A stretch of DNA of 64,000 bases from Lepidodermella squamata (taxonomy: Eukaryota > Animalia > Gastrotricha), in contig JBLDXI010000010.1 in the NCBI GenBank assembly GCA_047495785.1, positions 2,170,001 through 2,234,000 of the forward strand, written 5' to 3'. Within the stretch, counting starts at the first letter, position 1, and the number at the start of each line of letters is the position of its first letter. A program made the position numbers and the translations under genes. The notes beneath the pieces were generated by a model. It was given only the letters and a program-made list of their open reading frames with translations, was not told the DNA's origin and did no database searches. Positions 1,709 to 26,147 of the stretch are shown one piece after another.

Positions 1709-3057
1709 TCACTCTTCAGTCTTTATGCCGGAGAGCGGCAGCTCGAACTCATCGATGGAGACCCCTCGATTCTGGCGAGCTCCCTCGACCAGAGACTGCA
1801 GGAATGCCTGTTCATCGATCATCGGATACCTCGGCACGGATCCAGCTTCGAAATCCAACATTTGTTGCAACACATGGCCACTGAGGTAGTAAAACTTGGC
1901 CGAGCCAAGTCCATTCTCACGGAGCAGGCGTTCGTGGTCAGTTTTAACTAGATGTGCGACATCATTCTTCAAACGCAGGCAAGTTGGTTCATCAAGTTCG
2001 GAAAATTTCTTCCCACCATGATTATTGTACGCTTCGTTTTCCAGGTCGGTATCAGACTTCGAACGAACGAAAATGCACTCCTGACCCATTTTCTTAGCCT
2101 GAAGGCCGTAATCGATGTCGAATTGCGTCACACGGTTGTTGGTAACGACGATCAACGCGTCCATGAAGTACAGGAAATTGTCGAGGTAGTACTTGCCAGC
2201 TGGATGCTTCAATGTCATCGCGCCAGGATGGTCCCAGAAAACAAAAGACGGGTTGAAGTGGCTTTCGTACTTGGAAGCCGTTCCAGTTGTTTCGACAACT
2301 CCAACCGCAGCGTTTTGGCGAAGAAACGCGTTAAGCAGCGTCGATTTGCCGTTGCCGGATCCGCCGATAATCGCAAAGTTGAACTTGCTTGTATCAAGAT
2401 TGTGCGATTTCGCCTTTTTTCGAAGTTCCTCCTGTGCGCGTTTTCGCTCGTCTTCCAAAGCAGCTAGCTTCTTCTGTTTCTCCTCTTGAAGCTTCTTCGC
2501 AACTTCCTCATCTGCCGACACCTGCAACTGCAACTGCAGCTGATTCAACTGTTGCCTCATTTGTATGTATGTATGTATGTATTTTATTCACTTTCCTTCA
2601 CATTTTACATTTACAACATTTTTTAATAATTTTTTTTTACAAAAATTGAATTTATAAACAGAACACAATACTACATATGATCATGGGTAGAAATAGAGTT
2701 GATTAATTTTTTTTTTATTTTACAAAGTTTTTATTTTTTATTACAAAACACAATCATATACAAGATAGGAGAAGGAAAGATGAGGTTGCAAAGGGCAAGT
2801 CGCCTTGCCACTAAAATGAACCTCTGAATATTGTAATTCAAAAAATTATTATCGCATAATTAAGTTCTAAGTAGCGATCCTGTTCCATAAGTTGCGGCGT
2901 CATATCCTGTACACATTATACGCATCGATACATTTGCTTGCGGCGAAAATTGAATGAGACTTACCACAACTTGAACCGGAGCTTGAGATTCTGACTTGGG
3001 CGCAAACAAGCTGCATATTTCCTTCACAACCATTGCCGGGACGATATATTCCGCCAT
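1709..3057 (-). CDS. IRG/IIGP-like GTPase, clade A copy 1; exon 2 interrupted by a 322-bp insertion (disrupted or N-terminally truncated)
   Basis: G1 GGSGNGKS, switch I VGVVETT, G3 FWDHPG, G4 RSKSD. Exon 1 3057-2965 (MAEYIVPAM...PVQVV), GT-AG intron 2964-2907, exon 2 begins DMTPQLME, then the insertion, then MRQQL... to the stop at 1709. Collinear with the paralog at 7294-8307. Confidence 0.85.
2561..2882 (-). mobile_element. 5'-truncated retroposon 3' end with AATAAA and (TACA)n tail
   Basis: Removing it restores ATG GAA ATG AGG (ME-MR), matching paralog length. Minus strand ends AATAAAA(TACA)5. Confidence 0.7.
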
Positions 3058-3946
3058 TTCAGAGTCTAAAAGATAAGAAAATGGGTATATGTTAAAACAG
3101 TTTAATTGAATAATGTGATCGACATTTAGCTCAATAATAATCCTCCGAATGTCCTAATAATATCAGCAAATGCAAATGGTCGCAGAGGTAAGGGGAGGGA
3201 ATATAAAAGAGAAGGAAAGAGTAGCATTCGAAAATTACGTAAAAACCATAGAGAACAGAAGTACAAGAGAGGAAACTCACGCTGGAAACTTGAAACATTA
3301 ATTCGAAGCGGTTTTTTAAGCCGGATCTTTCGACAAAATGCGCGTTGTTTTTTAGCGCACTTTTCTCGCGCAAACCCACTAAATTTCGGCAAAGCTTTTC
3401 TCCGGCTGTACTACTTCAAATCGGACTCCCCTTTTTATGTTGAATAGACCTGGTCTGTTCTCCATGGTAAAAACACAATTTCAATGAAAGAAAATCGTAC
3501 AATAGTAATTGTATTCCGCGCGATATCTTCGATTAGAAGTCCTGACAGATGACAGATGAATCATATTATTAGTTCGTGACTTTTATCGCGTGCACGCGAC
3601 CGCTTCAAGGCTCCATATTTTGCTTGAAAAGCTGCGTGATTCATATTGCAGCACCGCATGGCGCAGCACGGCTATATATCATCCACTCAATCAATTGTAT
3701 CTTTCTCAAAAAAATATGTCTTGGCTTTTGACTTCTTCTGATTAAAACCCCTTAGATATCGAAGCTTTAACAACGCCAAAGCGCGGGCCCCTATGTTGAA
3801 AACTTTGGCTAGTACCAAGCCAGATGATCTGAAATTAGGCTTTGCTATAGCCAGCCAAATCTTGTACTAATTTATTTTTGTTATCTTCGAAATGTTTCTT
3901 GTATCTTAGGTATTTGACTTTGATTTATTGATCTTCATTCATCATC

Positions 3947-4924
3947 ATGGGTAATCGCGAAAGCACACATGTCGAGTATCGAATCCCGCCAGAATTTTGG
4001 GTATGCTTCCCAATGCTTTCTCTACATTTACCTTACTTTTTATACTAGGAATTGCTACAAAAGCAGCAAGCTGTATTAACGCAACTGCAAACCAACATCA
4101 CACAAGAAATCGACAAAGCTAAGAAGCAAGCGCTGATCGAAGAAAAGCAACGCATCGAGGCCGAGAATGAGGCGAAGCGTAAGCGAATGGAGGAGGAAAT
4201 CAAGCGAAAAGCGAGAATCTTTGGCATCAATCTCGACGACTTCAACTTTGCAATCATCGGAATAACTGGCGTTGGCAAGTCGACCCTAATCAACGCGTTG
4301 GTTCCGGGCGCGAAGGCTCACGTGAGCGTCGTCGAAGGCACAATGCGACCAGCACCTTACCGCAGCCGCAACGTCGTGCTTTGGGACGTTCCTGGTTCGG
4401 CGACAAAGAAACATCCGGTTGCTAATTACTACGCTGACAACTTTCTGTACCTGATGGATTCGCTGATCATTGTGACTGGCTTTCGTTTGTCCGAATTCGA
4501 TGTTGAGTTTGCGAAAGAAGCGATCCGACATGACCAGAGGGTTGTTTTCGTGAGGTCGAAGGCTGATGTGGACCTTGCCAATGATTACTACGTCAAGGAG
4601 GAGAAATATTGGGAAGACTGCCCGGCCAACGACCGAAAACGTGTAGCCGACGCCGTGAGCAGTGAAATTCGAGACAACTACACACGCCAATTTCAGGAAT
4701 CTGGCGTTGCGAATATGCAGGATGGCTCTGAGATTCCGTTTCATTTCATCAGTTCGCGGGCTATTGATGAAATCGTCAAGGGCGTTGATGCTAGCCGACG
4801 CAAATGGCCGCAGTTGGATGAGGAGAAGCTGGTGAAGACGTTGTACGAAGGGCTCAAGAGAGACGGTGCTTTGCGAAGTATTGAAAACTTCAGTCTTCCT
4901 CGGCTTCTTGCTCCGGAAAACTAA
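3947..4924 (+). CDS. IRG/IIGP-like GTPase, clade B copy 1, predicted N-myristoylated (MGNRES)
   Basis: Exon 1 3947-4000 MGNRESTHVEYRIPPEFW, phase-0 intron 4001-4048 (GTATGC...TAG), exon 2 4049-4924 with GITGVGKS, WDVPG, RSKAD. Confidence 0.9.
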
Positions 4925-6219
4925 TTCAAGCTAATTCTTTGTGTCATCAAAGGTCATGTTTCGAGACCTATTGATTCATTTTTCGTTTAAATTGCATTAC
5001 TTGGCCGTTTCTGCCCACTTTAATCTTGAATGTTTCAATAAAAATTGCACGTTTGCCTCAATCTGATTTGTTTTTCTTAAATCAATTTGCGTTCGAAAGT
5101 GCAGAGAGAAGTCTTGAAAGTAATTTGAACACCTTTAGTTGCGTCATGCAAATTTCATTCAGGGTTACTAGAATGACGAGGAATGCAGTTAACTAAGTTT
5201 GAGGTTGTGGTTTTCGAAGTGCACATCGCGTATCGCTTTATTACGACTAGTTTCAGGCTTATTTTTGAACCTTGAATCAGAACTTGACAAGCCTCGATTT
5301 GAGCCGGAAACATCTCCAATTGGTTATAATCAGCTTCCAGTTAGAGCAGCCATGTTCACAAGCAAACGAAAACAAGCAATATTATATATCAAAACAAGCC
5401 GTCAATCAGCTAACTACCGTGGCCTGCCTCGTCAAATGACGAACATCTGCTACAAAACACCGTCGTAGGAACCGCAAAGATTAACGGCAGATTGACCATT
5501 GATTCGAACGCAGTAAAATCGATGCGATCCTACTCATCGCATACTCGCTTGACAGCGATGATGCATAGACTGGAAATACTCATGTACTCAAATGCTTTGG
5601 TTATTCCCTACCCAAAGAGCCAAATACTTTCCCGTAAATCACTCCTAACGGTATCGATCGGCTCAACTCGAATCCTTCGATTTCAATCGATCGATACTAC
5701 GTGGCCTCATCTGATTAACCCCTTGATATGGATATCGTTTGATAGGAAATTTTGTATACATAGATTCGGGAAGGTTCCCTCAATTTCCTTGCCCTTTTAT
5801 TCGTGAATGCACTGGGAGCCTAAAAACACGTGTCATTTAAATAGGACGTTGGGCGTGAGTGGGTTACGAAGCTTCCTACTACAGCTTTTCCAGCTCAGGA
5901 TGACTTTGCTGGCATATTTTCTATTTATTTTGCCCAAATATCAAAAACTGGTCAGAATTGAATTTTCATCATTATACAGACCATAATTGGCCTGTGACGT
6001 TGGCTTAAGGCTAAGCCTGGTCGCAGTTGGCTGCGATGAGCTGGATCTCTATGAGGAAAATATCCCATACCAATGCTCTCGAGACTCTAACGAAAGCTTT
6101 CAAATCTTTTCTTACAATATACAAACAACTCCACGGATAACAAACAAAGTGGAATAACAATCATGCCAGGTTCGTATTCCAGATTCTAGTACTCCTATGT
6201 ATTCCCTTTGGCGGAGGTG

Positions 6220-6527
6220 TCGAGTTGGCAAGCGGTTCGACCAGTGAACCGATCGAGGGGAGGAATCGCAACGGGAAATTGCAATTGAAATAGGAGCCTG
6301 TCGTAGATGCTGTGCTACGGCTGCTTCATTGATGAAAACGAAACAAATTGACGCGCAAGCTACGGCTGTGGTCACATGACTCGCGTTCGACCAGTCGAGA
6401 AGGGCGATGAGAACAGCTGATATGATGAGGCCACAGCTGCAGATTGCAAAAGCTGCCATCCAATTGACACGATGTTTCCAGGATCTCTAAAATTTGAAGG
6501 TTAAACAAATCATTCGCAATTTTATCA
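6220..6527 (-). pseudogene. Orphan copy of the last exon (TM6-TM7) of the class C GPCR gene
   Basis: Highly similar to 31278-31585, including the upstream intron end. No other GPCR exons nearby. Confidence 0.8.
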
Positions 6528-7293
6528 CATGTGCTTCATAGAATCATGCGAACATGTGATTCATAGAATCACATAGAATTTAGCTCAAAAAAAGTATTAT
6601 TTATTCTTGACACGAATTATACTTGCACAAAACATGTTTTTTGGCTATAAAATCAAGCTCCTCATGAGGGTGTCTATTTGCGTATCTGAGCCAAGGCTTA
6701 GGGTTAGGGTTAGGGTTAGCTTCGGGGTTTGGCCTCGATACGCCAGTGATTATTACGCAAAAACTGAGGGTAATTCTCTGATGGACAACATCCCTCGTAC
6801 GCATCTGTGTACGATACGAATATCGCCAATTTTGTGTACATAGATCTCCCCCATATGTGTCAAATGATGCCGAGTATGTGTCTCAGCTGTGGCGTCTTAC
6901 TGGAAACCTCCTCAGCCTGGAACCTTTGACAGATTCCCGGGGAACATCGTAACACCCGATCCAGCAAAAAAGAAATCGAATGTTTTTCTTCGAAGTTGTT
7001 GAATAAAGTTTTCGATATATACAAATTTACACGATGACCACCAACGTTTGTTCACTTAAATTAAATTATCAATACAAATGTTAAACAAGCAGTTTTATTC
7101 CACTGGGTCTCACTTCTTTCATTCCAAAATCAAAAGCTTCAAGAAAGAGAAAAACAACGTTTAAGTTCAACGAACTGAAGCTTAAACTGTGAAAGAAGAA
7201 GAGGGGCGCCACGACTTCATAACCATATCTCAACTGGCTTGGAAGGTGAACAATTTCAAAGCAACGCATTGCCAATAGATGACTCTTCCTCCT

Positions 7294-8307
7294 TTATGCT
7301 GACGCGGGCAGCTTGAACGCATCGATGTCAACTCCTCTGTTCTGGCGAGCTCCATCGACCAGGCACTGCAGGAACAACTGCTCGTCGATGATCGGGTACT
7401 GCATTTCGGAAGTGGCTTCGACATCCAATATTCGCCTCAACACACGGCCGCTGACGTAGTAGAACTTGGCTGAGCCGAGATGATGTTCGAAAAGTTGGCT
7501 CTCGTGGTCTGATCTTACTTGTTGGGCGACATCATTCTTCAAACGCTGGCGGGTTGATTCATCAAGTTCGGAAAATTTCTTCTCCTTGTAGTTCTCGTAA
7601 GCTTCGTTATCCAGGTCTACATCAGACTTCGAACGAACGAAAATGCACTCTTGGCCCATTCTCTTAGCCTGGAGCCCGTATTCAATGTCGAACTGTGACA
7701 GCCGGTTGCCAGTCACGATGATCAAAGCGTCCATGAAGTACAGGAAATTGTCGAGGTAATACTCGCCAACAGGATGCTTCGGGGTCGCGGCCCCAGGATG
7801 GTCCCAGAAAACGAACGACGGGTTGAAGGAGCTCACGTACTGAGATGGCTTCGCCGTCGTCTCTACAACTCCGACTGCAACGTTTTGACGCAGGAACGCG
7901 TTTAGCAACGTCGATTTGCCGGTCCCAGCAGCGCCGATGATCGCAAAGTTGAACTTGCGTGTGTCGAGGTTGTGCGATTTCGCCTTCTGCCGAAGCTTCT
8001 CCTGTGCGCGTAGGCGCTCAGCCTCCAGTGCCGCCATTTTCTCCTCTTTTTCTTGTTCAAGCCGCCGAGTAACTTCCTTATCTCTGGAAACTTGCATCAT
8101 CAACTGCAGTTGATCCAACTGAATCTTCATTGCTCTTAGTTCCGGCGTCATGTCCTGTTCAGAAGTAAATAGGTAATCTGACTTGTATGCTGAGAAATGA
8201 ATAAGACTTACCAGAACTTGAACAGGGGCGTTAGCTTCTGAGCGAGGCACTATCAATTTGATTGCTTCCGCCAGGGCAGGGATAACTACGCTTTTGATAA
8301 GTTCCAT
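7294..8307 (-). CDS. IRG/IIGP-like GTPase, clade A copy 2
   Basis: Exon 1 8307-8212, 57-nt in-frame intron 8211-8155 (GTAAGT...CAG) read through by the ORF track, exon 2 8154-7294. GAAGTGKS, DHPG, RSKSD. Confidence 0.9.
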   Translation of the reverse strand: MELIKSVVIPALAEAIKLIVPRSEANAPVQVLVSLIHFSAYKSDYLFTSEQDMTPELRAMKIQLDQLQLMMQVSRDKEVTRRLEQEKEEKMAALEAERLRAQEKLRQKAKSHNLDTRKFNFAIIGAAGTGKSTLLNAFLRQNVAVGVVETTAKPSQYVSSFNPSFVFWDHPGAATPKHPVGEYYLDNFLYFMDALIIVTGNRLSQFDIEYGLQAKRMGQECIFVRSKSDVDLDNEAYENYKEKKFSELDESTRQRLKNDVAQQVRSDHESQLFEHHLGSAKFYYVSGRVLRRILDVEATSEMQYPIIDEQLFLQCLVDGARQNRGVDIDAFKLPASA

Positions 8308-8649
8308 CTTGGAATCAATGGTCTAAACATCGAAAAGGCATATTCATTTTTTACTTCAAAAGCATCGTTGACCGAACGAAAATCTGTTTTATTTTGTTCC
8401 AATTTGACATACGCCGGAAAAAGAAAACTAGCACTAAGAATAAGGCCAAAGGATAGGCCAAAGAAAAAAGGGAAGGAAAAATCCGGCTAAAATGAGTTTG
8501 AAATTAAAATTATACCCGATTTTCAACTAGCTGAAATGGTGTCTTTTGAAAAAGATGAATAGCGCATGATTGTTAACTCGATTGAAAACTATGAATTTTT
8601 CGGATAAAGCAAGATCTTCAACTGTGGGGGTGGGTAAGAATTTATCTTT

Positions 8650-9216
8650 GCCTGCCCTCGCCCTCTTCAAAACCGGAAACAGTATATCGTTAGCGCTGTT
8701 GAATAACTCGGATTTAGGCTTGTTTACATCCGTTTCAAGGTCACGCGTGCCAAGTAAAAAAGAGCCATTTTAACGTGAATAAAAAGGCAACAGCAAAAGA
8801 ATTTTTACTTGTCACCTATCAACATGTAATGGATGTAAACAGGCCTGCATCCGAGTTATTCAACGGCGCTAACATTGTGTTTGAGGTTGTAAGTTGAAAA
8901 AAATCCGCACGCTGATTGGTCAGTTGGCTCGTATCCATGACTCCGCCTTGCTACTTGATCGTGCGATCCATAAAATGTTTGCAAAAAATATCTTTTTATG
9001 AATGGTTTTACGCATTTGTTGGAAACGCGTGCTACGATACGGCCTTCATAAAAATAATAAAAGCCACAAATTATATAGATCGCACGATCAAGTAGCAAGG
9101 CGGAGTCATGGATACGAGCCAACTGACCAATCAGCGTGCGGATTTCTTTCAACTTACAACCTCAAACACAATGTAACGATATACCGTTTCCGGTTTTGAA
9201 GAGGGCGAAGGCAGGC
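8650..9216. mobile_element. Three nested inverted-repeat (MITE) elements
   Basis: Outer IR gcctgccctcgccctcttcaaaaccggaaac / gtttccggttttgaagagggcgaaggcaggc. Middle TATATCGTTAGCG...CGCTAACGATATA element. Inner CATTGTG...CACAATG element 8873-9173 with about 95-bp TIRs and a TAA duplication (PIF/Harbinger-like). Confidence 0.8.
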
Positions 9217-10446: not shown

Positions 10447-11752
10447 ATGTCCTACAAGGATTTTGGAAATGTCGCACAAGGTAATAAACTTATTTCCAAA
10501 TTTAAACCGCGAGCATCTTTGGATTTTTATCAGGCACTTCAAGCTTCTCTGTTGATGCGGAGCAGCGCTCAAGTGAACAGCAGGCAGCTGAAAGGCAACA
10601 GCAGCAGCCAGAAGAAACTGGGTTAAAAGAAGCTGAATCGAATGGTGTAAGTTGGCATTCACCGCTCATTTTGCGTTTTATTTCGCGTATTTCAACATAA
10701 TCGGAGATAGAAGAGATCGCATTTATCATTTCTAGCTTCAAGCTTTAAAAATGGACATGTCTCGAGGCTGGGCCGGTCAAGAGATGGCATCGATCAAGGC
10801 GCCCCGCTCGGAAGCTAGAGCCCCAGTTCATGTCTTGGTATGCCTTTTTCACTTCTCCGCTGACAAATGAGTGCACGCATTTTATGCACAGGACACGACA
10901 CCCCAGCTTGTGCAAACAAAGCAGCGGTTGGAACTACTGCAGTTGCAGCTGCGCACGTCGAATGATGCGGACCATACTCGGCTGGAAAACGAGAAACGGG
11001 AGAAGCTAGCAGCACTGGAGGCAGAGCGCCGACGCGCGCAGGAGGAACTTCGGCAGAAGGCGAGATCGCACAGCCTCGATACTAAAAAGTTCAACTTTGC
11101 GATTATCGGCGGGCCTGGGACCGGCAAATCAACGCTGCTGAACGCGTTTCTCCGTCGAAATCTTGCAGTTGGCGTGATTGAGACGACGGAGAATCCATCT
11201 CAGTACGTGAGCTCCTTCAACCCGTCGTTCGTTTTCTGGGATCATCCTGGAGCCATGACCCCGAAGCACCCTGTTGGCGAGTACTACCTTGAGAATTTCC
11301 TGTACTTCATGGACGCGTTGATCATCGTAACTGGCAACCGGCTGACACAGTTCGACATTGAATACGGGCTCCAGGCTAAGAGAATGGGCCAAGAGTGCAT
11401 TTTCGTTCGCTCAAAGTCTGATGTAGACCTGGACAACGAAGCTTACGACAAGTATGGTGGGAATAATACATTTTCCGCCCTCGACGAATCAAATCGCCGG
11501 TGCTTGAAGGATGATGTCGCGCATAGAGTCAAATCGAACTACGAGACGCAGCTTATGGAGCACGGACTCGGCTCGGCCAAGTTTTACTACGTCAGCGGCC
11601 GCACGTTGCAGCAAATGATGGACTTTGAATCCGCATCCGAGCCGAAATACCCGATCATCGACGAGAAGTTGTTCCTGCAGTGTCTGGTCGATGGAGCTCG
11701 CCAGAACAGAGGAGTTGACATCAACGAGTTCGAGCTGCCCCCGTCAGCATGA
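10447..11752 (+). CDS. IRG/IIGP-like GTPase, clade A copy 3, with N-terminal Q/E-rich extension
   Basis: Phase-consistent exons 10447-10480, 10534-10646, 10736-10837, 10892-11752. GGPGTGKS, DHPG, RSKSD. The first two exons are less certain than the last two. Confidence 0.85.
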
Positions 11753-13290: not shown

Positions 13291-14286
13291 TCAATCTTCC
13301 CAGACCATCTTGGAAAGAACAAACTCGCCTAAACTTCGCAAAGCACCGTCTTTCTTGAGCCCGTCGTGCAACTCCTTCATCAGCTTCTTCTCATCCAGCA
13401 GCGGCCATCTGTACTGACTGGGTTGATCACCATTGACGATTTGCGCGACTGTCCGGGAACTGATGAAGTAAAACGGAACTGTTGAGCCATCCTTCATTTT
13501 CGCGACGCTGTATTCCCGGAATTGGCCTCCGTAATTCTTCTTGATTTTTGTTCTGACGCCGTCGGCTACACGTCTTCGCTCGTTGGCCGGGCAGAACTCC
13601 CATTCTTTCTTCTCCGAGTCGTAGTAGTCGTTGGCCAGATCCGCATCAGCCTTCGACCTCACGAAAACAACTCTCTGGCCATGTCGAATCGCTTCTTTCG
13701 CAAACCCAACGTCAAACTGAGACAAGCGATTGCCGGTCACAATGATCAGCGAATCCATCAGATACAGAAAGTTGTCAACGTAATAATTCGCGACCGGATG
13801 CTTCTCTGTTGCCGAACCAGGCACGTCCCAGAACACGACGTTTTCAGCGTTCTTGGACTTGCTACGGTGGGGTTCTGGTTTCATTGTGCCCTCCACAACA
13901 CTTGTTAGGGCGTTGGCGCCTGGAACCAACGCGTTGATAAGGCTTGACTTGCCGACCCCGGCTAGACCGATTATGGCGAAGTTGAAGTTGTCGACATTGA
14001 AGCCGAATTCTCTCGCTTTGCTTATGATTTCAGCCTCCATTCGCTTGCGCTTCTTCTCTTTCATAGCCTCGATGCTATTTTTCTCCTCCATCAACCTTAG
14101 CTTCACAGTTTCATCAATTTTACTGGCCATCATTTTCTCCAGATCTGCTATTTGGGCATTGAGCCGCGCAAGCATGGCCTAGTAGTAAAATAGCTAGGTC
14201 AATATCGAGAGAAATCGTAGAAACCTTACCATAATTTCAGGCGGAGTTCGATACTCAACGGTAGGACGGCTTCGGCTTGAACCCAT
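13291..14286 (-). CDS. IRG/IIGP-like GTPase, clade B copy 2, predicted N-myristoylated (MGSSRS)
   Basis: Exon 1 14286-14230 MGSSRSRPTVEYRTPPEIM, intron GTAAGG...TAG, exon 2 14178-13291 with GLAGVGKS, WDVPG, RSKAD. Confidence 0.9.
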
Positions 14287-15945
14287 TGCGATAAAGAAAT
14301 GGTATGTTTGTTCAAACTAAAAACTGCTGATATAATAAATTAAAAAATTAATGCTCGTCAGAGCAGAATATATTTCGAGCGCTAAATTCGAGCTCTAAAT
14401 TGAGAAGCGAAGTCTTATTCATGGTCAGGAAAATTCATGAGAAAAGTAATCAAGTTGCCAATGATCCGGATTAAAAAGATCCGGAGAAATCTGATCAATG
14501 TCGAAATAAGCACCCGGGTTAGGTAGATATTTAACAAGAACCCGCTAATTTTCTTGTTAGAAATCTGATCCTACAGGAAAAATTAGCGAAACTACCAAAT
14601 CATGGGTTTCCCGGGGATCCTCCGCTAAATTCTTCAATGTCTTCGATAAAATGGCGGATAGAGGCGGAAGTTTCAAGATTCAATTTATAAAAGAATTAGT
14701 TGAATCTCCTCAAAAATTAACAAAATGGCCGCGCAACTTTTGGGACACGCTTATCCTAGTTTGTATCCTAGTTTCATGATTGCTTAAATTGCAATCATGG
14801 GCTCTGATTTGGTGTTGTAATGTTGCGATGAATTAGTGGTTTCGATGAAATATTGATTGCTAAAGAAAAATTATGTTGCTGAAGAAAGAAAGTTAAACTG
14901 TGAATGGGGAATATAAAAAACAATGATACGTTGATATCGCATATGCCATATACAATGATACGTCGGGCAGCTATAACAATGATGATAATAAATCAACCGC
15001 GCAAATATTGAAGCGGTGGAACAGTCGCGTGCCGGCAGTGAACGGATTAGTCACGGATTAGCATGAATCATTTTACATTTACAGTGAAACTCCGATTCTG
15101 CGTCCTTTTGCTTTCCGTCTGTCCGGAAATCGGGGTATGTATGTTACGACCCAAGCCAGAAAGCGACCACATCGCGGTCTGGTCGACCAGACCCCGACGT
15201 GGCTTTAGGCGATTTCCACGTCGCGCTCTGGTCGACCAGGATGCGACGGGCCTGCAATCTCTCTTATCAAACACCTTTGTCGGGCTTCGGCTGACAGGTG
15301 TCAACCCAGGTACGGTGGGCTCCAAATCGAGAACAATGGACGCGCGCGCGCATTGTTCCGCCGTGCTCTGGCTCACACGCGCGCGCACGAGCCAGAGCCC
15401 GACGCAGCTACGCATGTACACACCCTAATATTGTATTACTTTACAACCTTGAAACGCTTTGGAGACATTTTATTTAGCACTCAACAGCCATATTTTACTT
15501 GGTAAAATTTCGCTAATGTCGTTGTGATTTTTCTTGAATTATAATGACATTTCAAAAATCGGATAATTTTTTCTTATAAAAGCAACAGCCGAATGATAGG
15601 AATATTAATAATCCATTAATTTTACAAAAACAGCATCGCAAACAAATTGATTTTTTACATCGATAAAATTATTATATTTTAATCGAAATTACGAGCACAG
15701 CAAACATTTTTACAGCATTTTTTCAAGTACATAGCAAGACATACATGTATGGACGAAAAAAAACCAAATTTCCGATCTCAGATTTCATAGCATGAGAAAA
15801 ACAGCAAAACATCAAAATACATAGTATAAATCAGTGAAATTGGCATTGGTGTCGCATCGATATACTACAAACAGTTATACGAAAAGATTTTTTAGCATTC
15901 AAAATTTTTAGTATAATAGCGCCATATAATTCACGTGATATAAAT

Positions 15946-18799
15946 TTAGCTAGTTACTGGCTGTTTTTTATTCTTACAAGTGCGATTGTTGTGGCATTTT
16001 GAGTTGCAAATATAATTATTCCGCTTGCACCAGCAGTGCCCCGATTCGCAGTCCAGCTTGCATTTGCAGCCCTTCTGCGTCTTCTTGCCGTCGTCAGCTG
16101 CCGCATTGTTGCCGGGTCGAGACAGGATTGCCGATGAGCGCAACGACATTTGTTTGTCTGGGACTTCTGACGGCCGAAGGGTGACCAAATCCGTTTTCGT
16201 CACTTCCTGCCGCAGAAAATGTCGATCCAAGCGGCCATGTGGAGTGCCGAGAACGTACTGGCCGCGCTCGGTAACTTCAAGGACAACACCGGCCTCATTT
16301 CGAGGGTCGACAGCGCCGCGATCGAGCTCGGGGATTGGAATTAGCACGTTGTCGCCGGGCTGAAGGGGCGGCAGGCGCTGTTGTGAATCCCGAATCATTC
16401 TGTCCGCTTGCAAGTTGAGATTAGCCGAAGCCATCTTTCGATTGCGAGCCATAGTATTGATGCGGTTATCGATGTTGATTTCTGCGCAATCATCGCAGTG
16501 GGCAGAGTTGACGACTACGTTGGTCACGCACTTCTCACACGCCTTGGCTTGGCCCGCTGTTACAGGTTGAACGACGGGTGTCAGTTGGACTGCCATGAGT
16601 TGAACAGCCGGCTGTAAACAATAAATAAATCAATAAATAATTTCAATAGTTCTTGGTTGGGAAAAAATTGAAGGGCAAACATTGCAGGGGAAGGAATCGA
16701 AATTCGCTCACCTTCTCATTCGCCTTGTTGCCAAGAACCGTTATACTCACTGACGATTCGGATGAAGCAGTCGGCGACAGTTCCGAGACGATTGGTGCAG
16801 GCGTCGGAGTAGTAACGGCCGTTGTCGTTGCCGAAGTCGATGCGATTTTTGACGCGGACGTAGTACCGGGCGTCGTCGTAGAAGCAGCTGTCGCCGTAGT
16901 CGAAGTAGTAACGGCCGTTGTCGTTGCCGAAGTCGATGCGATTTTTGACGCGCACGTAGTACCGGGCGTCGTCGTAGAAGCAGCTGTCGCCGTAGTCGAA
17001 GTAGTAACGGCCGTTGTCGTTGCCGAAGTCGATGCGGCCTTGGTACTGGGCGTCGAAGTAGAAGCGTCAGCAGCCGCCGAGCGGTCAAAGTTTCGTACCA
17101 GCAGATGCTGTTGAGCGGGTTGAAGCTGGTTTGAACTGCTGGCTTGCGGCGTTGCCTCAAGGACGAGGCAGTCGTCATCGGCATCATCATCGGATTAATC
17201 GGTATCACCAGTAACTAAAAGTGATAGGAACAAAACGAATGAATAATTTGGTCGAAAACTGGGAGATAAAAACCAGATAAAAAAAATTAAATGAAACTTA
17301 CTGATTTCGCCGCTCAAGACTTTATCCAAGTCTTTTTCATTCCGAATGAGATCGATGACATCGCGCGGAACGCCGACCAAAGAGTAGAGCCCGCAACGAG
17401 GTCGTTCACCAAATTGGCATTGGTACGGCGTCATTTTCAGCCCGGAATGAACCGACGAGTTGATCGAGTATTGAACCGGCCCAAGCGCCTGGTACCAGTC
17501 ATCGGTGTTATTGTCGACAAGATAGCTAAGTATAGCCCCTTCGACGATTTTGTTGCGATTTTCAACGCTGAAAATGAAGAAAAGCGATATATAACAAATA
17601 ATGATTGAAATTTTGAAATAAATTTAATTTTATAAAATTTCCAATTTTTTTGTAATGCCCAAAAATTTCCAATTAAATTTTCAGCAATTTCTAATTAAAA
17701 AAATCTCTAAAAAAAAATAAATGGATTTTCATTGCTAACCCGCCCTGGGACTGGCTATGCCTCGGCTTGCCATGGATAATTTTGCCGCCAACAAATTTGT
17801 CGTTGATGTGCTTCACCAGTGTCCCATTTGCGAACTCGGAACCTGGGCAATAGAGTTATCATAAAATATTGAAAAAATTGGCAAAAATTATAACAAACCG
17901 TTATCGCAGTGGAGAAGGGCTGGGCAGCCGAAGTCATAAAAAATCGACATTATGACATCTGCCACGGTGAACATGTCCTTACTTGTTAGAGGGCGTATGA
18001 GCACGTATTTCGTGAGCATGTCGACGTAGGTGAGAATGAATCTCCACGGCTTGTCTTGCGTTGTGTTGGTGAAATTCGGCTTCTGTTGCATATCGATCAA
18101 ATCAACCTGCGCCCTGTGACCATACTGCTCACCCGGCCGAGACGGCTTGACCACGGCTCCTTTCTTCTTATGGGTCTTCTTCGCCAAGCACCCAGGGCAG
18201 AACTCGCAATAAATATCGCAAATTTCGCGCGTGATATTTGCTGCAAAATTTTGCACTTCTTGATGGGTTCGACGACCAGCCCGATGATTAGCCCCATGGC
18301 ATTGACCAATTATCTTAAAAAATATATATAATTACCGAAAAATCGAAATTAATTGATCGAACCTAAATAAATTCCTAGGTTGACGAACTACTTTATCAAA
18401 AAAAACCCAAGCGATAAAATTTAGCGGTATGCGATAAAAATCGAAATCGAATGCAACAATAATTAAAATTTGACTTACATCAAAATATTTGTCCACCGTG
18501 TAGTAATACTTGAACTTGGTATTGTCGGCGTCGTTAGCAGCCTTGTCGACCAAGCGATCTTCGCCATTGATGTGTTGGACGAAATAACGGTTTTCGCGAC
18601 GGCGGTCCTTTGACGACTTCTCCGCGTGTTCGGCTGTCTTCAACGTTGCCGCTTTCGTTTCGGCGATGACGTTAGCCAGCTGCTCGGCGTTGAAATGGGC
18701 GCTGTTATCGCCCTTCTTTGCGTCCATGATAGTGAGCAGCTTTGCCTGAAATTGCTCGCGCTGGGCCTGAACGCGGGGATCAGGCACCGGGTCCGCCAT
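15946..18799 (-). pseudogene. Spliced retroviral-integrase-like DDE transposase (KRBA2/SCAND3-like), about 757 codons with one in-frame TAA
   Basis: Exons 18799-18479, 18313-17899, 17842-17740, 17567-17302, 17214-16712, 16611-15946, all phase-compatible. H2C2 finger (CHGANH...FCPGC), DDE (AQVDLID / HCDNGSEF / SQGGVENRN), C-terminal Cys cluster CKCKLDCESGHCWC...CNSKCH. Stop at 17195-17197. Confidence 0.85.
16808..17037. repeat. 96-bp tandem repeat (about 2.4 units) encoding a Thr/Ser/Ala-rich tract in the transposase
   Basis: Units start at 16808, 16904 and 17000. Minus frame reads STSATTTAVTTSTTATAASTTTPGTT. Confidence 0.9.
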
Positions 18800-18900
18800 T
18801 AACTTGAAATTAATAATTACCCTAGAATAGAGAAAAACAAACAATAGAGCAAATTAACAACAAATCGGCCAACATTTTTTATTGTAACGGTTCAATTATT

Positions 18901-18982
18901 GGTTCAGTGAAAAGGTTCAGTGAAAAGGTTCACACGTCATAGTCACAGTGAAAAGGTTCAGTGAAAAGGTTCACACGTCATA
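18901..18982. repeat. 13-bp tandem repeats (GGTTCAGTGAAAA) upstream of the transposase
   Basis: Directly visible, in two duplicated blocks ending CACACGTCATAG. Confidence 0.8.
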
Positions 18983-20362
18983 GATCTTGTTCGTCGAAGA
19001 TCGGAAGGTCGGGGAGGCTGTCGATGACTGCTTGACGGGCACGTTTTTCTTCGGCCAAACGTGCTTGACGGGCACGCTTTTCTTCGGCCAAACGGGCCTT
19101 TTCTGCTTCCTCGACAGGGTCTACTCGGTCGGGGACGGGGAAGATGACGCGAATGTTGTATCCGATAACCCAGTAGACCCCGGCGATCTCGGGATCGGCG
19201 ACAGCCGGCATCTAACGAGTGCCGTCGTCGAAATCGACTGGGACTTCGAGGACAAGCTGATCATCAAAATTCGACGACGACAGTGCAAGATGTATCAAGT
19301 GAAATGTAAAAAATCTAAACATAAACATACAGAGGCCACGTAGCAAGAATTCCATAGACTTTTGGATAGATATTTTATTCTTATAAAAATTAGCAAATTT
19401 TTAAGGCGGCTATATTATAAGACTCGTAATGTAGTGAAAATAACGACAACAAGCCGGATTACTATTAGGAATGTTAGGATTATTAGGAATCTGCGCGTAA
19501 CTTTGAAATGCTGTAAAAAGAGACAGGGTTCCACCGATAAGGAATGAAAGGAAAAGGTTCCAACAGGGTTCCCCACTAGTCATAGGGCAAGTTCGATAGC
19601 GAAGAAACGGAATTGAGGGGAGTTGGCATCTTATTAATAGGGCCTTGCAAAAATTGGCTACACAAAAAGATAGGCAAGAGGTAGGATGTTGATAGGGTGT
19701 GATTTCTCGGAACTTAAACCCTCCTTAATCCACCTGAGTACACACTTCACGCATCTAATCACTGCGAGAGGGCGGTATTATACCAGCAGTATTCAGGCGG
19801 CTCAGAATGTTATGCTACAAATAAAGGGAAAAAAGGAAAACTCTAAAAGACATACTCTTAAAGGCAGTCTTTTAACCGTGCTAGACAAAAAAATGGAAAT
19901 CAACTAAAACAGGGGGCCAAATTTAGGGTTTGAAATCAAAGGTAAATTGAAGGAAATTATAAAGCTAAAACGGGATTAATGATGACTCCCCTCGACATTT
20001 GCGACATTAGGTGGATATTGCGTGACAATTAGGGCGCGACTCGTGACTCGCGCGAGATGCGATATGCGTCTGTCAAGCGGCTGGCCTATGAGATGAAAGT
20101 GCGGCTCCTCTCGACAGCGTTAACGCGCATTCCTGTTATTTCTTTCAATGAGCCGCTATCCATCAGCTATCTATCAGCAGCACCTGGATACTGTACTTTC
20201 CTTCGTGTCAAAAGTCAGTTTAAGTCGTATTTATTACACCCTGCTCACGTTTCGCTCAAAATTAATCAGTTCTGGCCATCATATTTATTTTATTCAAAAA
20301 AATCGTGAAAAAACAACGGGTTTAATAGATGCATAAAGATCTAAAATTTCAACAACTTTTAA

Positions 20363-21352
20363 CCCTCTAATGCCGGCAGCTGCTTAGTTTATACAAATTG
20401 AGTATACTCATTGGGGAAAATTCACTCATTTTGAGTTAACTAACACGCAACTTGTGTAAACTCAGTCTGGGAGGCGTTTTTCAGGCTTCTGGGCTTGAGG
20501 CCGATTATACACACGTGTCACCTGAGTTTACTCATGCTTGAAAACTTGTATAAACTCGCTCTTGAGTTAACACAGGAAGAGCGCAAAAATCACATGTATT
20601 TTATTCACAATTTTACAAAATTGATAAAAGTGATAAAAAATTCGCGATGAAACAGCATGCAGTGGCAAGTGGAACGTCGGCTTGCGGCGCCATATCAGCA
20701 GCGCAGGTAGATGTCGCGACCAGTTGTTGGGCGGTGCGCTTCGGATCCGCTGTAGGTACCGCTAAAAGAGGTTGACTTACCATATTTGAAATAAAACTTA
20801 AAATAAAATATAAACTAAAGATGTGTGATTCTAATGCGCTCTCCCTGTGCAGTTTATATGTCCGATCGTATGCATTATGAGTGAGCATTTATTATTGCGT
20901 AACTATAGAAAACGCATTACTGTTACGCAATGTTATGTTGCGCAACATCTGCCACGACATGCGTGCACGTCATGTCCTGAATTATTTATTTCCCCCACCA
21001 AAAATGAAAAAACAAGATATCGAAATAACTATAGGTGCATGAGTAAACTCAAGTGATAGTTGTGTTAATACAAAACTGTTTGCATCGATGCACACAAAAC
21101 AGGCCGCCCGCGCGACCCCCGTGTCATTTGGTCGATATTTGACTGAGTTTACACAAAAAGCAGGCGTACCCGTGATTTGCGCGCACACCTGTGTTACGTA
21201 ATCAACGCGGCGAGTCTGCGGTTTTCGGAATCGGGTAGCCCAGATGGCCATCTAAACGTTTACCAAAACGTTTTTCCTGAATAAGTCGGGAAGTATGAGA
21301 ATTCAAGGTGAATAGCCGCAGTTTGAGTATACACGTTCCCGGCATTAGAGGG
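20363..21352. mobile_element. Non-autonomous piggyBac-type element nested in the large transposon
   Basis: TTAA-CCCTCTAATGCCGG ... CCGGCATTAGAGGG-TTAA. Confidence 0.85.
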
Positions 21353-21909
21353 TTAACGGTGTCGAGAACATGACAATGATGAGAATCCAAGGTTGTAAAG
21401 TAATAAAATATTAGGGTGTGTACATGCGTAGCTGCGTCGGGCTCTGGCTCGTGCGCGCGCGTGTGAGCCAGAGCACGGCGGAACAATGCGCGCGCGCGTC
21501 CATTGTTCTCGATTTGGAGCCCACCGTACCTGGGTTGACACCTGTCAGCCGAAGCCCGACAAAGGTGTTTGATAAGAGAGATTGCAGGCCCGTCGCATCC
21601 TGGTCGACCAGAGCGCGACGTGGAAATCGCCTAAAGCCACGTCGGGGTCTGGTCGACCAGACCGCGATGTGGTCGCTTTCGGACTTTGGTCGTAACATGT
21701 GTTTATACATTCTTCATTAATTTCCGCAGCATCGAATTGCATGTAAATTGACCCGGATTAGCCGTATTTTCGGATTTCCCGCCCGATTTTTTGGCCGGCC
21801 CGTAGATGACGCCAAATCGGGGTTTCACTGCGTATTAACAAAATAATAATAATATTATGTCTCATAGATAAATAAAAAAGATAGATCTGACACGCTAGTA
21901 CATTTATGT

Positions 21910-21994: not shown

Positions 21995-22073
21995 TTTGGT
22001 GGCAATGTTGCACCCACAATAGCTTTTCATCTTGTTGAGATATCTATTCACGGCAAGAACGCCAAAAAATGAG

Positions 22074-22147
22074 TTGCCACTGGGAGGATCGAACTCATGA
22101 CCTTCGCGTTATTAGCACGACGCTCTAACCAACTGAACTAAGCGGCC
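22074..22147 (-). tRNA. tRNA-Ile(AAT), possibly pseudogene
   Basis: GGCCGCTTAGTTCAGTTGGTTAGAGCGTCGTGCTAATAACGCGAAGGTCATGAGTTCGATCCTC... followed by T6. Some stem mismatches. Confidence 0.8.
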
Positions 22148-22215
22148 AGATGAGTTCAGCTAACCTGAAGCAGTCTGTGATCTGAGAAATAAACTGAATT
22201 ATTTTTTCAAAAGTG

Positions 22216-22295
22216 TGACCTCGACGTGAGACGTGACTTGAACACGCAAACTTCTGTTCTGGAGTCAGACGCTCTGCCAATTGAGCTACGTAATC
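22216..22295 (-). tRNA. tRNA-Trp(CCA) pseudogene
   Basis: GCGTCTGACTCCAGAACAGAAG...GCGTGTTCAAGTCACGTC with a 7-nt duplication (TCACGTC)2. Confidence 0.75.
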
Positions 22296-22364
22296 GTTGT
22301 CTGAAAGCAGCGCTGTCAATCGAGTCTGAAGATGACAAATCGCCAGCGCCGGCATAAAAACACT

Positions 22365-22436
22365 AGGGAAGTCCGGGAATCGAACCCGGGACCTCTCGCA
22401 CCCTAAGAGAGAATCCTTCCACTAGACCAACAGGCC
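22365..22436 (-). tRNA. tRNA-Pro(AGG), possibly pseudogene
   Basis: GGCCTGTTGGTCTAGTGG...TCTCTCTTAGGGTGCGAGAGGTCCCGGGTTCGATTCCCGG. Acceptor stem mismatched. T5 follows. Confidence 0.8.
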
Positions 22437-22512
22437 TCTACAACGTTTATCACGCTGCAACCGAAACATCAGCCAACACAGCAAATTCAGCAGTAATAAA
22501 CAAAACGGATTG

Positions 22513-23121: not shown

Positions 23122-24124
23122 TCAATTATCTGAAGCAAGAAACTTGGGAAGAACGAATTGATCAATATTTCGAAAAGCGCCGTCTTTCTTGAGTTGCTCA
23201 AATAGCCCCTTCAGCAGCTCCTTCTCATCCAACAACGGCCACTTGCATCGGCTGGCTTCAACGCCATCGATGATTTCTTTGACAGTTCGCGAACTGATGA
23301 AATGGAACGGAACCTCTGAGCCATCCTTCATTCTTGCGACGTTGTATTCCAGGAATTGGTCTCTGTAATTGGTCTTGATTTTATTTCTCACGCCTTCGGC
23401 TACATGTCTTCGCTCGTTGACAGGGCAGTCCTCCCAATATTTATTCTCCGCGTCGTAGTAATCACTGGCAAGATCAACATCAGCCTTCGACCTCACGAAA
23501 ACAACTCTCTGGCCATGTCGAATCGCTTCTCTCGCAAACCCAACGTCAAACTGAGACAGGCGATTGCCGGTCACAATGATCAACGAATCCATCAGATACA
23601 GAAAGTTGTCAGCGTAATAACTCGCAACCGGATGTTTTTGTGTAGCCGAACCAGGCACGTCCCAGAACACGACGTTGTTCGCGTTATCAGCGTAAGGCGT
23701 TGGCTTCATTGTGCCCTCGACAACACTCGTGTGGGCCTTCGCGCCCGGAACCAGGGCATTGATAAGGCTTGACTTGCCAACGCCGGCGATGCCGATTATG
23801 GCGAAGTTGAATTTGTCGAGATTTAGGCCGTAATCTTTCGCCTTCTGCTTGATTTCAGCCTCCATTCGCTTGCGCTTCGCCTCTTTCTCAGCTTCGATGC
23901 GTTGCTTCTCTTCGAGCAGCTTTTTCTTGACAGCTTTGTCGGTTTCAACTGCCATGTTGTTTTGCAGTACCGACATTTGGGCTTGGAGTGTTTCAAGCAT
24001 TTTCTAGTAACAATAAACAATAAAGGTGAGACGAATCCCGAAGAAATTATTGGCATCATACCGATATTTCCGGCGGGACTCGATACTCAATTACTTGACG
24101 CCGGCCTCCTAGAAGATTACCCAT
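23122..24124 (-). CDS. IRG/IIGP-like GTPase, clade B copy 3 (MGNLLG N-terminus)
   Basis: Exon 1 24124-24062 MGNLLGGRRQVIEYRVPPEIS, intron GTATGA...TAG, exon 2 24003-23122 with GIAGVGKS, WDVPG, RSKAD. Confidence 0.9.
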
Positions 24125-24445
24125 GATAATGAAATTGGAGTAGCAAATCGAAATCAACCTAAAAAGATTCGGAAATACATTGCAGAAATCATGAGCTCTT
24201 TTTATAGCAATAGCAAAAAAGTTTAACATAGTTTCGCTTTGTAGCATAACTTGCAAACACGGGGGAGCCCTTATTTTATAAGCAATGTTATTTTTCGAAA
24301 CAAATTCGTATTATAAAATACGAAATATTGCATTGCATGTATCACAACCGATTGGGTAGATGAAAAAACGAAGCATGCATCCATCGAATATGAATCATAC
24401 AATTCATTAATGCAAACGTTCAAGCCGTGAAGCAATCGCGTGCCC

Positions 24446-24686
24446 AGGGTGCGATCTTGGATCTCCGAGCTGCCAGGGATGGGAAATTTTTTTTTGCTGT
24501 TTTTGCCAAAATGACTAGTCATTTCGGCTAATAACAGAGCGAAGCAAGAAAATTTTGGCGATTTTTCACTGAAACACGCTCCAGAACCTTCCAAAATTAA
24601 CAAAACAGTGGAATAAATTCTCATTTTGTCGTCTAGCCCGGTCGAGCTGATGGGATGATCCCCCCCCCCCCCCCCCCCCACCCCCC
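24446..24686. repeat. Interspersed repeat, second copy inverted at about 51545-51772
   Basis: Shared sequence, seen as similar spurious ORFs (KMRIY.TVLLI.EGSGACFS). C-rich end. Confidence 0.65.
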
Positions 24687-24908
24687 TGAAAGTCGCACAC
24701 TGCGCGTGCCATCAACAAATAATCACTGGCATCACTCTTATGCTCAGGCAACATACTTATAACCTTCAAAACGCTACGATCTTGGTCTTGTATATTGAGT
24801 ACCTCAACACTATTTTGGGCGAGGCCAATGCCAATGATTACCTCCATGTTTGCCTCAAGTGGCCCACCTAATTTTACTAGCAATTCTTCTAAAATCTTAT
24901 GGGTCCTC

Positions 24909-25236
24909 CGGTGAGCGGAACCAAATTTGCTGTATCGGAACCAATATGCTGTAGCGGAACCAAATTTTAGACTTTTCTAGTGGCCTGAAATCGCTTTTCG
25001 GATATTTATTGCAGGTCAAGATTGGCCACAATAATTCTAGAAAATTCACAGGTGAATTCAGCACACTATTCTCTATCAGACGGAGTGTTCAATTCAGAAT
25101 TCATGCTTAGCCTAAAATTCGTCTAAATATTCAAAAAATAACTCTTAGCATATTTCGACTTTGGTTCCGCTACAGCAAATTTGGTTCCGCTACAGCATAT
25201 TTGGTTCTGCTACAGCAAATTAGTGTCCGCTCACCG
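24909..25236. mobile_element. MITE with CGGTGAGCGGAACC ends and 20-bp subterminal repeats; related end at about 13010-13095
   Basis: Terminal inverted repeats and repeated TTTGGTTCCGCTACAGCA units. Confidence 0.7.
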
Positions 25237-25276
25237 TAAATTTGGTTCCGCTAAAAGATATTCTGAAATCTTATAG

Positions 25277-26147
25277 GCCCAATTAGCTCCACTGCAAAGC
25301 AACATCGCAGTAGCCGACAAAGCTGTGAAGCTAAAGCTGCTCGAAGAGAAGCAACTCATCGAAGAAGAGGCGAAGCGCAAGCGAATCGTGTCGGAAATCA
25401 AGCGAAAGGCGACGGAATTTGGTCTAGATCCCGATGACTTTAACTTTGCAATTATCGGGCAAGCCGGCGTCGGGAAGTCGACTCTCATTAATGGTTCTAG
25501 GCGCCAATGCCCACGCGAGTGTTGTGGAGGGCACTCATCGACCAAAGCCTTACCGGAGCCGCACTGCTAACGTGAATAACATCGTTTTCTGGGACGTTCT
25601 GGCGACGCTACGGCATCCGTCGCGAATTATTACGCTGACAACTTTCTGTACCTAATGGAATCGGTGATCATTGTGAGTGGCAATCGCCTGTCTGAATTTG
25701 AAGTTGGGTTTGCGAAACAAGCGATTAGACATGGCCAGAGAGTTGTTTTCGTGAGGTCGAAGGCTGATGCGTATCTGCTTAACTATTACTTCGATACGGA
25801 GGGGAAATCTTGGGAAGAGTGCTCGACTAACGACCGGAATCATCTGGCCAATGCAGTAAAGCACGAAATTATGAGGAATTTCAAGTTCCTCGAAGCCGAC
25901 ATTGCGACAATAAAGGATGGAAAGGATGGAGTTTCCGTTTCATTACATCAGTTCGCAGACCGTTGATGAAATTGTCAAAGGCGTTGAGACTAACCGACAC
26001 AAGTGGTCCCTGTTGGATGAGAAGAGGCTGGTGAAGACGTTGTACAAGCGCGTCAAGAGAGACGGTGCTTTGCGAAGTATTGACAGCTTCATTCTTCCTC
26101 AACTTCTTGATTCGAAAGGACTTGTCACATTCAAGGTCAAGTTGTGA
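25277..26147 (+). pseudogene. IRG/IIGP-like clade B pseudogene
   Basis: GQAGVGKS, SVVEGT, FWDV and RSKAD spread over several frames (multiple frameshifts). Exon 1 not found; a MITE lies directly upstream. Confidence 0.85.

Follow-up and report, generated by a model that had tools for sequence, protein, structure and literature searches.

In mouse IRGs, the C-terminal helical domain forms part of the effector, and membership in this GTPase family does not by itself speak for immunity: some vertebrate IRGs, for example Irgc, are not immune genes, which counts against simply assuming a defence role. Mouse Irga6 (IIGP1) and other GKS-class IRGs (structures 1tq4, 5fph, 7vex, and 7c3k) are proteins of 47 kDa with three N-terminal helices, a G domain, and a C-terminal helical domain of roughly 145 residues, and the mouse family also includes GMS members. 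Bekpen et al. (2005, PMC1297648) described the IRG resistance system of vertebrates as being of obscure origin, reported no unambiguous IRG homologues outside vertebrates, and found a large hydrophobic residue after DxPG in these proteins in place of the catalytic Gln. Our literature search found no paper on compact IRG-type proteins outside vertebrates, and for rotifers, nematodes, tardigrades, and fungi it returned none on IRG-type proteins of any kind.

The locus described here lies in a window of 64,000 nt (the whole stretch of DNA that was analysed) and was charted by tblastn with proteins of its two subfamilies, A and B. Seven IIGP/IRG-type copies occupy positions 1709–26147 in the order A− B+ A− A+ B− B− pseudo-B+, with spans at 1709–2560 (A1, minus strand), 4052–4924 (B1, plus), 7294–8307 (A2, minus), 10871–11752 (A3, plus), 13291–14175 (B2, minus), 23122–24000 (B3, minus), and about 25265–26114 (pseudo-B, plus); the same search returned no further A or B copy in the window beyond 26.1 kb. 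The number, order, and motifs of the copies agree with the original prediction, whereas its count of six full genes comes down to five that are clearly intact, because A1 is interrupted by an AT-rich insert and its transcript reaches a stop (see below). On balance, we favour reading the locus as a cluster of tandem and inverted duplicates that encode compact IRG-type GTPases of about 310–318 aa, a reading that we hold jointly with the membrane-switch function proposed further below. An exact look-up of the B3 main-exon product gave no record, a word-index search for close relatives produced four weak matches only, all of 400–434 aa, and no 10-mer (allowing at most one mismatch) that might represent a shared promoter motif was found in at least five of the six upstream regions of 400 nt.

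All six ORF-bearing genes begin with a short first coding exon, followed by a phase-0 GT..AG intron of 48–58 nt just 5' of the segment encoding a long helix. This intron had been anticipated, and its joints are confirmed by assembled contigs, which constitute the transcript evidence, for the three genes that these cover (A1, B1, and A2). The contigs that skip the intron (4001–4048 in B1, 8155–8211 in A2, and 2907–2964 in A1) occur only in run X1, which is taken to be of RNA and leaves the intergenic bins uncovered; such joints are absent from the DNA-like run X2. B1 (3947–5061, plus strand) consists of exon 1 at 3947–4000 (18 aa, MG start), an intron at 4001–4048, and exon 2 at 4049–4924, with a predicted protein of 309 aa (Pfam IIGP E 3e-20); its GT..AG joint 3999/4048 was seen in X1 alone, and a poly(A) loose end in run X3 places a poly(A) site near 5061. 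A2 (7294–8307, minus strand) has exon 1 at 8212–8307 (32 aa), an intron at 8155–8211, and exon 2 at 7294–8154, giving a predicted protein of 318 aa (E 1e-22); here, an X1 contig joins 7951–8153 to 8211–8324 and skips 57 nt with GT..AG ends on the minus strand. B1 and A2 are transcribed and spliced. The remaining three models were built from homology and GT..AG ends: A3 (10751–11752, plus strand; modelled on A1 and A2) with predicted exon 1 at 10751–10837, intron at 10838–10891, and exon 2 at 10892–11752 (315 aa, E 5e-20); B2 (13291–14286, minus strand) with exon 1 at 14230–14286 (19 aa, MG start), intron at 14179–14229, and exon 2 at 13291–14178 (314 aa, E 4e-20); and B3 (23122–24124, minus strand) with exon 1 at 24062–24124 (21 aa, MG start), intron at 24004–24061, and exon 2 at 23122–24003 (314 aa, E 7e-21).

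A1 (1709–3057, minus strand) has its exon 1 at 2965–3057 (31 aa), the intron at 2907–2964, and the head of exon 2 at 2883–2906, while its main GTPase ORF, which matches Pfam IIGP, lies at 1709–2560. Between the two parts of exon 2, at about 2561–2882, sits an insert of about 320 nt with 25% GC. An X1 contig covers 2634–2905 without splicing and reads on into the insert, in which it meets an in-frame stop, and X1 depth is zero at 2400–2599; A1 is probably inactivated or truncated at its N-terminus. That the insert could be a new intron was ruled out, as the in-frame stop comes before any GT donor and the RNA contig shows no splicing at this place. A contig of X2, which may come from a paralogue, joins 2529 to 2883 with 38 other letters, a junction that would shift the frame; a version of A1 without the insert may exist in the DNA.

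Pseudo-B (25265–26114, plus strand) belongs to the B type but has one in-frame stop close to its start as well as at least three frame changes. With B3 as the tblastn query it is aligned twice, in frame +2 and in frame +3, with an overlap between the alignments; its nucleotide identity to B1 is 76–84%, its DVPG motif has decayed, and no recognisable MG exon was found upstream of it. A transposon-like insert between B2 and B3 (15141–21698) has 311-nt inverted repeats, 99% alike, at its two ends and contains an integrase-core fragment at 17888–18256 as well as a 96-nt tandem array at 16803–17036. Pseudo-B, the interrupted A1, and a transposon inside the cluster together support the birth-and-death mode of evolution that had been put forward for these genes.

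Assignment to the IIGP/IRG family, for which window sequences rather than joined spliced proteins served as input to the searches and fold predictions, passed the proposed Pfam check: all six ORFs match Pfam IIGP (PF05049) with 72–81 bits against a cut-off of 24, with MMR_HSR1 as the next-best family at 30–38 bits, although the match covers only profile positions 29–181 of 375. Among solved structures, phmmer ranks IRGs (E 1e-13) ahead of EngA (E 5e-5), and Foldseek gives nothing but IRGs among its top 33 matches. The AF2 model of B1 (pLDDT 89.7) is closest to Irga6, its residues 63–286 superposing on Irga6 68–266 (1tq4; VIA-align Z 20.7, rmsd 2.3 Å over 187 residues, 32% identity). IRG structures as a group reach Z 17–20.7 at 28–33% identity in VIA-align, whereas YsxC, EngB, and mitofusin stay at Z 16–17 and 14–17% identity, with YsxC as the best non-IRG match (Z 16.9, 17% identity). 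The other TRAFAC families considered (EngA/Der, EngB/YsxC, and mitofusin/BDLP) were rejected, their sequence and fold matches being worse than those to IRGs. All six copies have the GxxGxGKS P-loop and VVE[TG]T without variation, which bears out the expectation of GKS in every one of them, and the phmmer alignment places their switch-I Glu and Thr on Glu106 and Thr108 of Irga6. As in IRGs, the catalytic Gln is absent.

The predicted protein plan comprises an N-terminal peptide on an exon of its own, one helix of about 57 residues, an IRG-type G domain, and, at the end, some 20 residues of floppy tail. The helix is confidently predicted over 57 residues, is 41–45% charged, and shows weak heptad occupancy; a coiled coil, as it had been called, finds no support in this. 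The proteins end about 56 aa past the G5 serine, slightly later than the 45–50 aa first given. The models align only with Irga6 68–254 (A1) and 68–266/271 (B1), so that the C-terminal helical domain is indeed missing, as proposed, but absent rather than replaced by an N-terminal element. Neither a mouse-type helical domain nor a size of about 47 kDa was found, and the N-terminus is a single helix.

The two subfamilies are cleanly separated. A copies carry the motifs WDHPG, RSKSD, and FYY[LV]SG and B copies WDVPG, RSKAD, and F[HY]FISS; 53 fixed differences stand against 74 invariant columns among 273 ungapped ones, and identity is 70–75% within a clade and 36–42% between clades. In the tree, the six copies form one clade (95/87) in which A and B are monophyletic with support of 100/100 and 100/99, respectively, with a metagenomic protein, P0007, as sister to all six (96/94). 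Both the fixed differences and the tree are in line with the division originally proposed, and the tree indicates that the A/B split arose by duplication within this lineage and is private to it. The duplication is old, since synonymous sites between the clades are saturated. Within clades, dN/dS is 0.19–0.36 (0.19 for A1 versus A2), which indicates that both subfamilies are kept under purifying selection. In sliding windows, pN/pS comes close to 1 where the helix begins and in the tail without ever going above it, and the lack of any codon window with pN above pS gives no sign of an arms race, in a set of three sequences per clade for which codon site models would have no power. The lipid-anchor signal predicted for B and not for A is found as a pattern match: all three B first exons start with MG and fit the PROSITE-type N-myristoylation pattern, by which B is predicted to be myristoylated, whereas the A exons do not. 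The latter encode a peptide of 29–32 aa without an anchor motif, and we rejected it as an amphipathic or transmembrane anchor in view of a hydrophobic moment of 0.23–0.34 and low mean hydrophobicity.

Set against mouse IRGs, the A and B proteins have in common the G domain with its GKS P-loop and the equivalents of Glu106 and Thr108, the missing catalytic Gln, an MG start in one subset, and an arrangement in multi-copy clusters with pseudogenes. In contrast, at about 35 kDa they are smaller, have one long N-terminal helix instead of three and no C-terminal helical domain, carry Ala (A) or Ser (B) after DxPG where mouse IRGs have a large hydrophobic residue, begin with a small first coding exon unlike their mouse counterparts, include no GMS member, and belong to an invertebrate without a known interferon system. 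Human IRGM is another IRG of which hardly more than the G domain is left (Bekpen et al.); it is, however, of the GMS class and a recent truncation of a long IRG, whereas A and B are GKS proteins with a long N-terminal helix and represent an old and widespread compact lineage.

How widespread this form is can be gauged from public data, where, out of 157 retrieved proteins, at least 51 (54 domains) are compact, defined as a profile match running through the conserved C-terminal D–E helix in a unit that ends within about 20 residues; the A and B copies likewise have the D–E helix and a short tail. Tails of the compact relatives are mostly 0–20 aa, conservation of D and E is 90% or more, and across 40 of these relatives GxxGxGKS and VVE[TG]T hardly vary. 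Named examples come from the nematodes Panagrolaimus and Acrobeloides (e.g., UniRef100_A0A914PLB2), the tardigrade Hypsibius exemplaris (OQV14472.1), and the fungi Jimgerdemannia (RUP51955.1) and Pisolithus (KAI6040375.1). These proteins share the plan of A and B, some of them beginning with MG or having an N-terminal helix that is charged, but they are only 21–31% identical to them, fall into other tree clades, are in some cases two-unit proteins, and in no case show the A/B split. In the ESM Atlas, the closest match by shape is to an IIGP cluster of 233 aa in which Basidiomycota is the commonest phylum (TM 0.66/0.81). P0007, the nearest relative found (310 aa on a JGI contig of 1126 bp; 201 bits, about 31% identity), also has the helix, G domain, and short tail; its MG start is continuous with the helix and, unlike that of B, lies outside the myristoylation pattern because Arg follows Gly. 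The idea of a lineage-specific system therefore holds for the A/B split, which is private according to the tree, and not for the compact plan, which fungi, nematodes, and a tardigrade have as well.

By analogy with mouse IRGs, A and B would act as nucleotide-dependent, self-associating switches at membranes, B being held there by its myristate and A being cytosolic or targeted in some other way, while the phase-0 intron would let a cassette of helix and G domain sit behind differing first exons. A compact IRG-type cluster with such a switch function is the account that we consider probable. A role in cell-autonomous defence is plausible in the light of the family and of the birth-and-death pattern of the cluster. 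It is rather unlikely that the genes instead encode housekeeping GTPases of membranes or organelles without any part in defence, in the manner of vertebrate IRGs that are not interferon-induced, such as IRGC (Bekpen et al. 2005, PMC1297648). Purifying selection throughout, with no window of positive selection, and transcripts in two runs without a recorded link to infection would suit such genes, yet these seldom occur in multi-copy clusters with pseudogenes and interrupted copies, and the recent paralogues here are 25–30% apart in protein.

Other readings concern the division into A and B within such a switch. The two may be subunits of a single machine, with myristoylated B either bringing the anchor-less A to a target membrane or co-polymerising with it there, as could be suggested by the preservation of both subfamilies since an old duplication, by the interleaving of their copies in one cluster, by the occurrence of B1 and A2 transcripts in the same run, and by an anchor signal confined to B. 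Nevertheless, the order A B A A B B pseudo-B lacks regular pairing, the sole divergent (head-to-head) A–B pair includes the interrupted A1, and two retained paralogue groups are equally to be expected of independent effectors with different targets; we regard a two-subunit machine as unlikely. Bolder still, and quite improbable in our estimation, would be a scheme in which the compact form is the ancestral minimal IRG and A and B are a two-part machine, with B nucleating on the membrane, A co-polymerising through G domains and long helices, and the intron serving as a socket for other heads. As for a regulator–effector pair after the example of mouse GMS and GKS proteins, in which one subfamily would keep the other inactive on self membranes, the 53 fixed differences do include one in G3 (DHPG versus DVPG) and one in G4 (SKSD versus SKAD), but with a GKS P-loop in every copy, an invariant switch-I Glu and Thr, and nothing like the GMS substitution, we consider it highly improbable.

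This expressed locus, which is under selection, shows that the IRG-type G domain is able to persist as a protein of about 35 kDa without a helical domain. The A and B proteins are members of a broad and unstudied compact family, in which the A/B split is what is specific to this lineage. If they are not immune proteins, the label "interferon-inducible GTPase" on database entries of this kind would be misleading. If, on the other hand, they act in defence, they would provide a minimal model for the IRG switch on membranes and a means of addressing whether chordates gained the helical domain or other lineages lost it.

An ORF listing together with tblastn of the whole window recovered seven related copies within 1.7-26.1 kb, arranged as A1(-), B1(+), A2(-), A3(+), B2(-), B3(-) and a decayed B-type copy, pseudo-B(+), just as the original prediction had placed them, and no further copy in the remaining 38 kb. 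All six open copies match the Pfam IIGP profile (E 1e-20 to 1e-22), with scores well over the cut-off and over every other GTPase family, which bears out the proposed family membership; the match covers positions 29-181 of the 375 in the profile only. The anticipated motifs likewise recur in the alignment, that is, a GKS P-loop in every copy, DHPG, RSKSD and FYY[LV]SG in clade A, and DVPG, RSKAD and F[HY]FISS in clade B, and the clades show 53 fixed differences among 273 ungapped columns. The reading frame of pseudo-B is broken by one in-frame stop and shifts at least three times. The observation behind the prediction is thus confirmed, with the corrections given below, and its interpretation is supported in part.

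A short coding exon opens each copy, and a 48-58 nt phase-0 GT..AG intron, in the phase and place that had been claimed, lies directly before the long helix. Contigs from three public sequencing runs (X1, X2 and X3) were placed on window 2400-8399. X2 covered all bins and behaved like DNA; X1 left the intergenic bins empty, and it alone contained joints that skip the introns, exactly at 4001-4048 (B1), 8155-8211 (A2) and 2907-2964 (A1). X3 terminates in poly(A) at 5061, which is 137 nt past the B1 stop. From these contigs we conclude that transcription and splicing of B1 and A2 match the prediction, both in one run. The gene models of A3, B2 and B3 are putative and drawn solely from homology.

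A1 is not the full gene it had been counted as among six: an insert of ~320 nt (25% GC, ~2561-2882) separates most of exon 2 from its first eight codons. The X1 contig continues without splicing from 2905 to 2634, an in-frame stop comes next, and X1 depth is nil at 2400-2599, so that A1 has probably been inactivated or has lost its N-terminal part. With a dN/dS of 0.19 versus A2, the event seems to be recent. The insert is single-copy, and one X2 DNA contig links 2529 to 2883 via 38 other letters, so a version lacking the insert may exist.

All searches and folds used the product of the main exon (exon 2, long helix plus G domain), with the exons unjoined. The B1 model (pLDDT 89.7, pTM 0.82, built with 40 aligned relatives) comprises a single helix over residues 2-58, the G domain, and a final helix (258-271) bearing a conserved D-E pair, beyond which the tail is poorly ordered; A1 follows the same plan at lower confidence. 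Foldseek matches 1-33 were all IRG structures. In VIA-align, the B1 model superposed on mouse Irga6 (a GKS-class IRG; structure 1tq4) with Z 20.7, rmsd 2.3 Å and 32% identity over 187 residues, as compared to Z 16.9 and 17% identity for the top non-IRG structure. The alignment pairs B1 63-286 with Irga6 68-266, so the window proteins finish at the end of the Irga6 G domain; of the proposal that an N-terminal coiled coil largely replaces the C-terminal helical domain, the absence of the domain stands and the replacement does not. The three N-terminal helices of Irga6 also find no counterpart. With 41-45% charged residues, and hydrophobic residues at 38-56% of a/d positions in the best register, the long helix did not bear out the claimed coiled-coil segment, and a coiled coil is a possible reading. 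According to phmmer alignment, the P-loop Lys-Ser pairs with Irga6 K82/S83 and the switch-I VVE.T with E106/T108; these residues are invariant in the window copies and nearly so in 40 relatives, DxPG is followed by Ala or Ser in place of Gln, and the nucleotide-binding and catalytic motifs are intact.

According to Bekpen et al. 2005 (PMC1297648), unambiguous IRG homologues were not known outside vertebrates and the origin of the family is obscure; our literature search found no account of compact IRG-type proteins from invertebrates or fungi. A word-index search for relatives gave four weak matches only; an HMM search with the six-copy profile retrieved 2944 proteins at E ≤1e-3 and 40 at ≤1e-30. 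The compact form (profile match through the C-terminal D-E helix, end within ~20 residues) accounts for 51 of 157 retrieved proteins and the long form (at least one domain match ending at G4-G5, then at least 120 further residues) for 41, the long-form proteins individually viewed continuing for ~200 residues past that match end. Named compact relatives occur in the nematodes Panagrolaimus and Acrobeloides, in the fungi Pisolithus and Jimgerdemannia, and in the tardigrade Hypsibius exemplaris, where a single protein holds two units. In the ESM Atlas, the best shape match was a 233-aa IIGP cluster in which Basidiomycota is the commonest phylum, and a feature search gave a 290-aa cluster in which Rotifera is. 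Some relatives (P0005, P0006 and P0009) contain two or three IRG-type G domains per predicted protein: there are three in a fish protein (883 aa), two compact units in one from a tardigrade (532 aa) and two domains in one from Pisolithus (605 aa). Such proteins may be genuine tandem arrangements, or neighbouring gene models may have been merged.

An IQ-TREE phylogeny of 45 domains united the six window copies in one clade (support 95/87), with A (100/100) and B (100/99) each monophyletic and the 310-aa metagenomic protein P0007 as their sister (96/94); vertebrate IRGs and nematode proteins each formed clades of their own (both 100/99). Given these groupings and the compact relatives in nematodes, a tardigrade and fungi, the compact plan is widespread and the A/B split alone is private to the Lepidodermella lineage, which narrows the claim of a lineage-specific system to that split. 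The MG start of P0007 runs on directly into the helix, a hint that a B-like start may be the older state.

All three B first exons have an MG start, fitting a PROSITE-type N-myristoylation pattern and followed by a conserved EYR.PPE motif. The A first exons (29-32 residues, terminating APV[QH]V[VL]) do not fit this pattern, and their hydrophobic moment is low. The suggestion that B is membrane-anchored and A is not is therefore upheld as a prediction. The phase-0 intron may allow the helix-plus-G-domain cassette to be combined with other N-terminal heads.

Within clades, dS is 0.45-0.90 and dN/dS 0.19-0.36; between A and B, synonymous sites are saturated. In a sliding comparison, pN/pS comes near 1 at the helix start and tail and nowhere exceeds it. 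Around G4, synonymous divergence falls to 0.15 (A2/A3) and 0.07 (B2/B3), and A2 and A3 are 88% alike in the G-domain part versus 79% in the flanks. Local gene conversion among the paralogues may account for the more-alike stretches (A2/A3, 7589-8064 versus 10979-11454; B2/B3, 13533-13794 versus 23364-23628).

The head-to-head A2/A3 spacer holds two close inverted-repeat pairs (8689-9174; 72 nt, 82%, and 110 nt, 95%), in appearance a small foldback element or MITE. Between B2 and B3 lies a transposon-like element (15141-21698) with 311-nt terminal inverted repeats (99% identical), enclosing a Cys-rich 216-aa ORF at 15946-16596; also inside it are a 96-nt tandem array at 16803-17036 and, at 17888-18256, a fragment of an integrase core. 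Rfam reports three tRNA-like matches in a row at 22073-22436 (-), only the first of which (22073-22147) ARAGORN calls, as tRNA-Ile (AAT). Two arrays of one 19-20-nt unit in opposite orientations (24914-24967 and 25160-25253) lie between B3 and pseudo-B. Downstream of the cluster are an open 1112-aa LINE ORF (36547-39885 (+)) that encodes endonuclease and reverse-transcriptase domains and is closest to metagenomic proteins (24-32% identical), and two C-type lectin domain ORFs (48355-48864 (-) and 59793-60326 (-)).

Co-assembly of A and B subunits as a two-component system is a candidate reading: the co-presence of B1 and A2 transcripts in one run and the long retention of both clades agree with it but fit independent effectors equally, and the gene order lacks regular A-B pairing. 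A division of labor like that between GMS regulators and GKS effectors in mouse is unlikely, because every copy is GKS. In summary, the cluster encodes a family of minimal IRG-type GTPases that is expressed and maintained by selection, and one subfamily (B) bears a predicted lipid-anchor signal. On the model of mouse IRGs, these proteins would self-associate at membranes in a GTP-dependent manner and may play a role in cell-autonomous defence.
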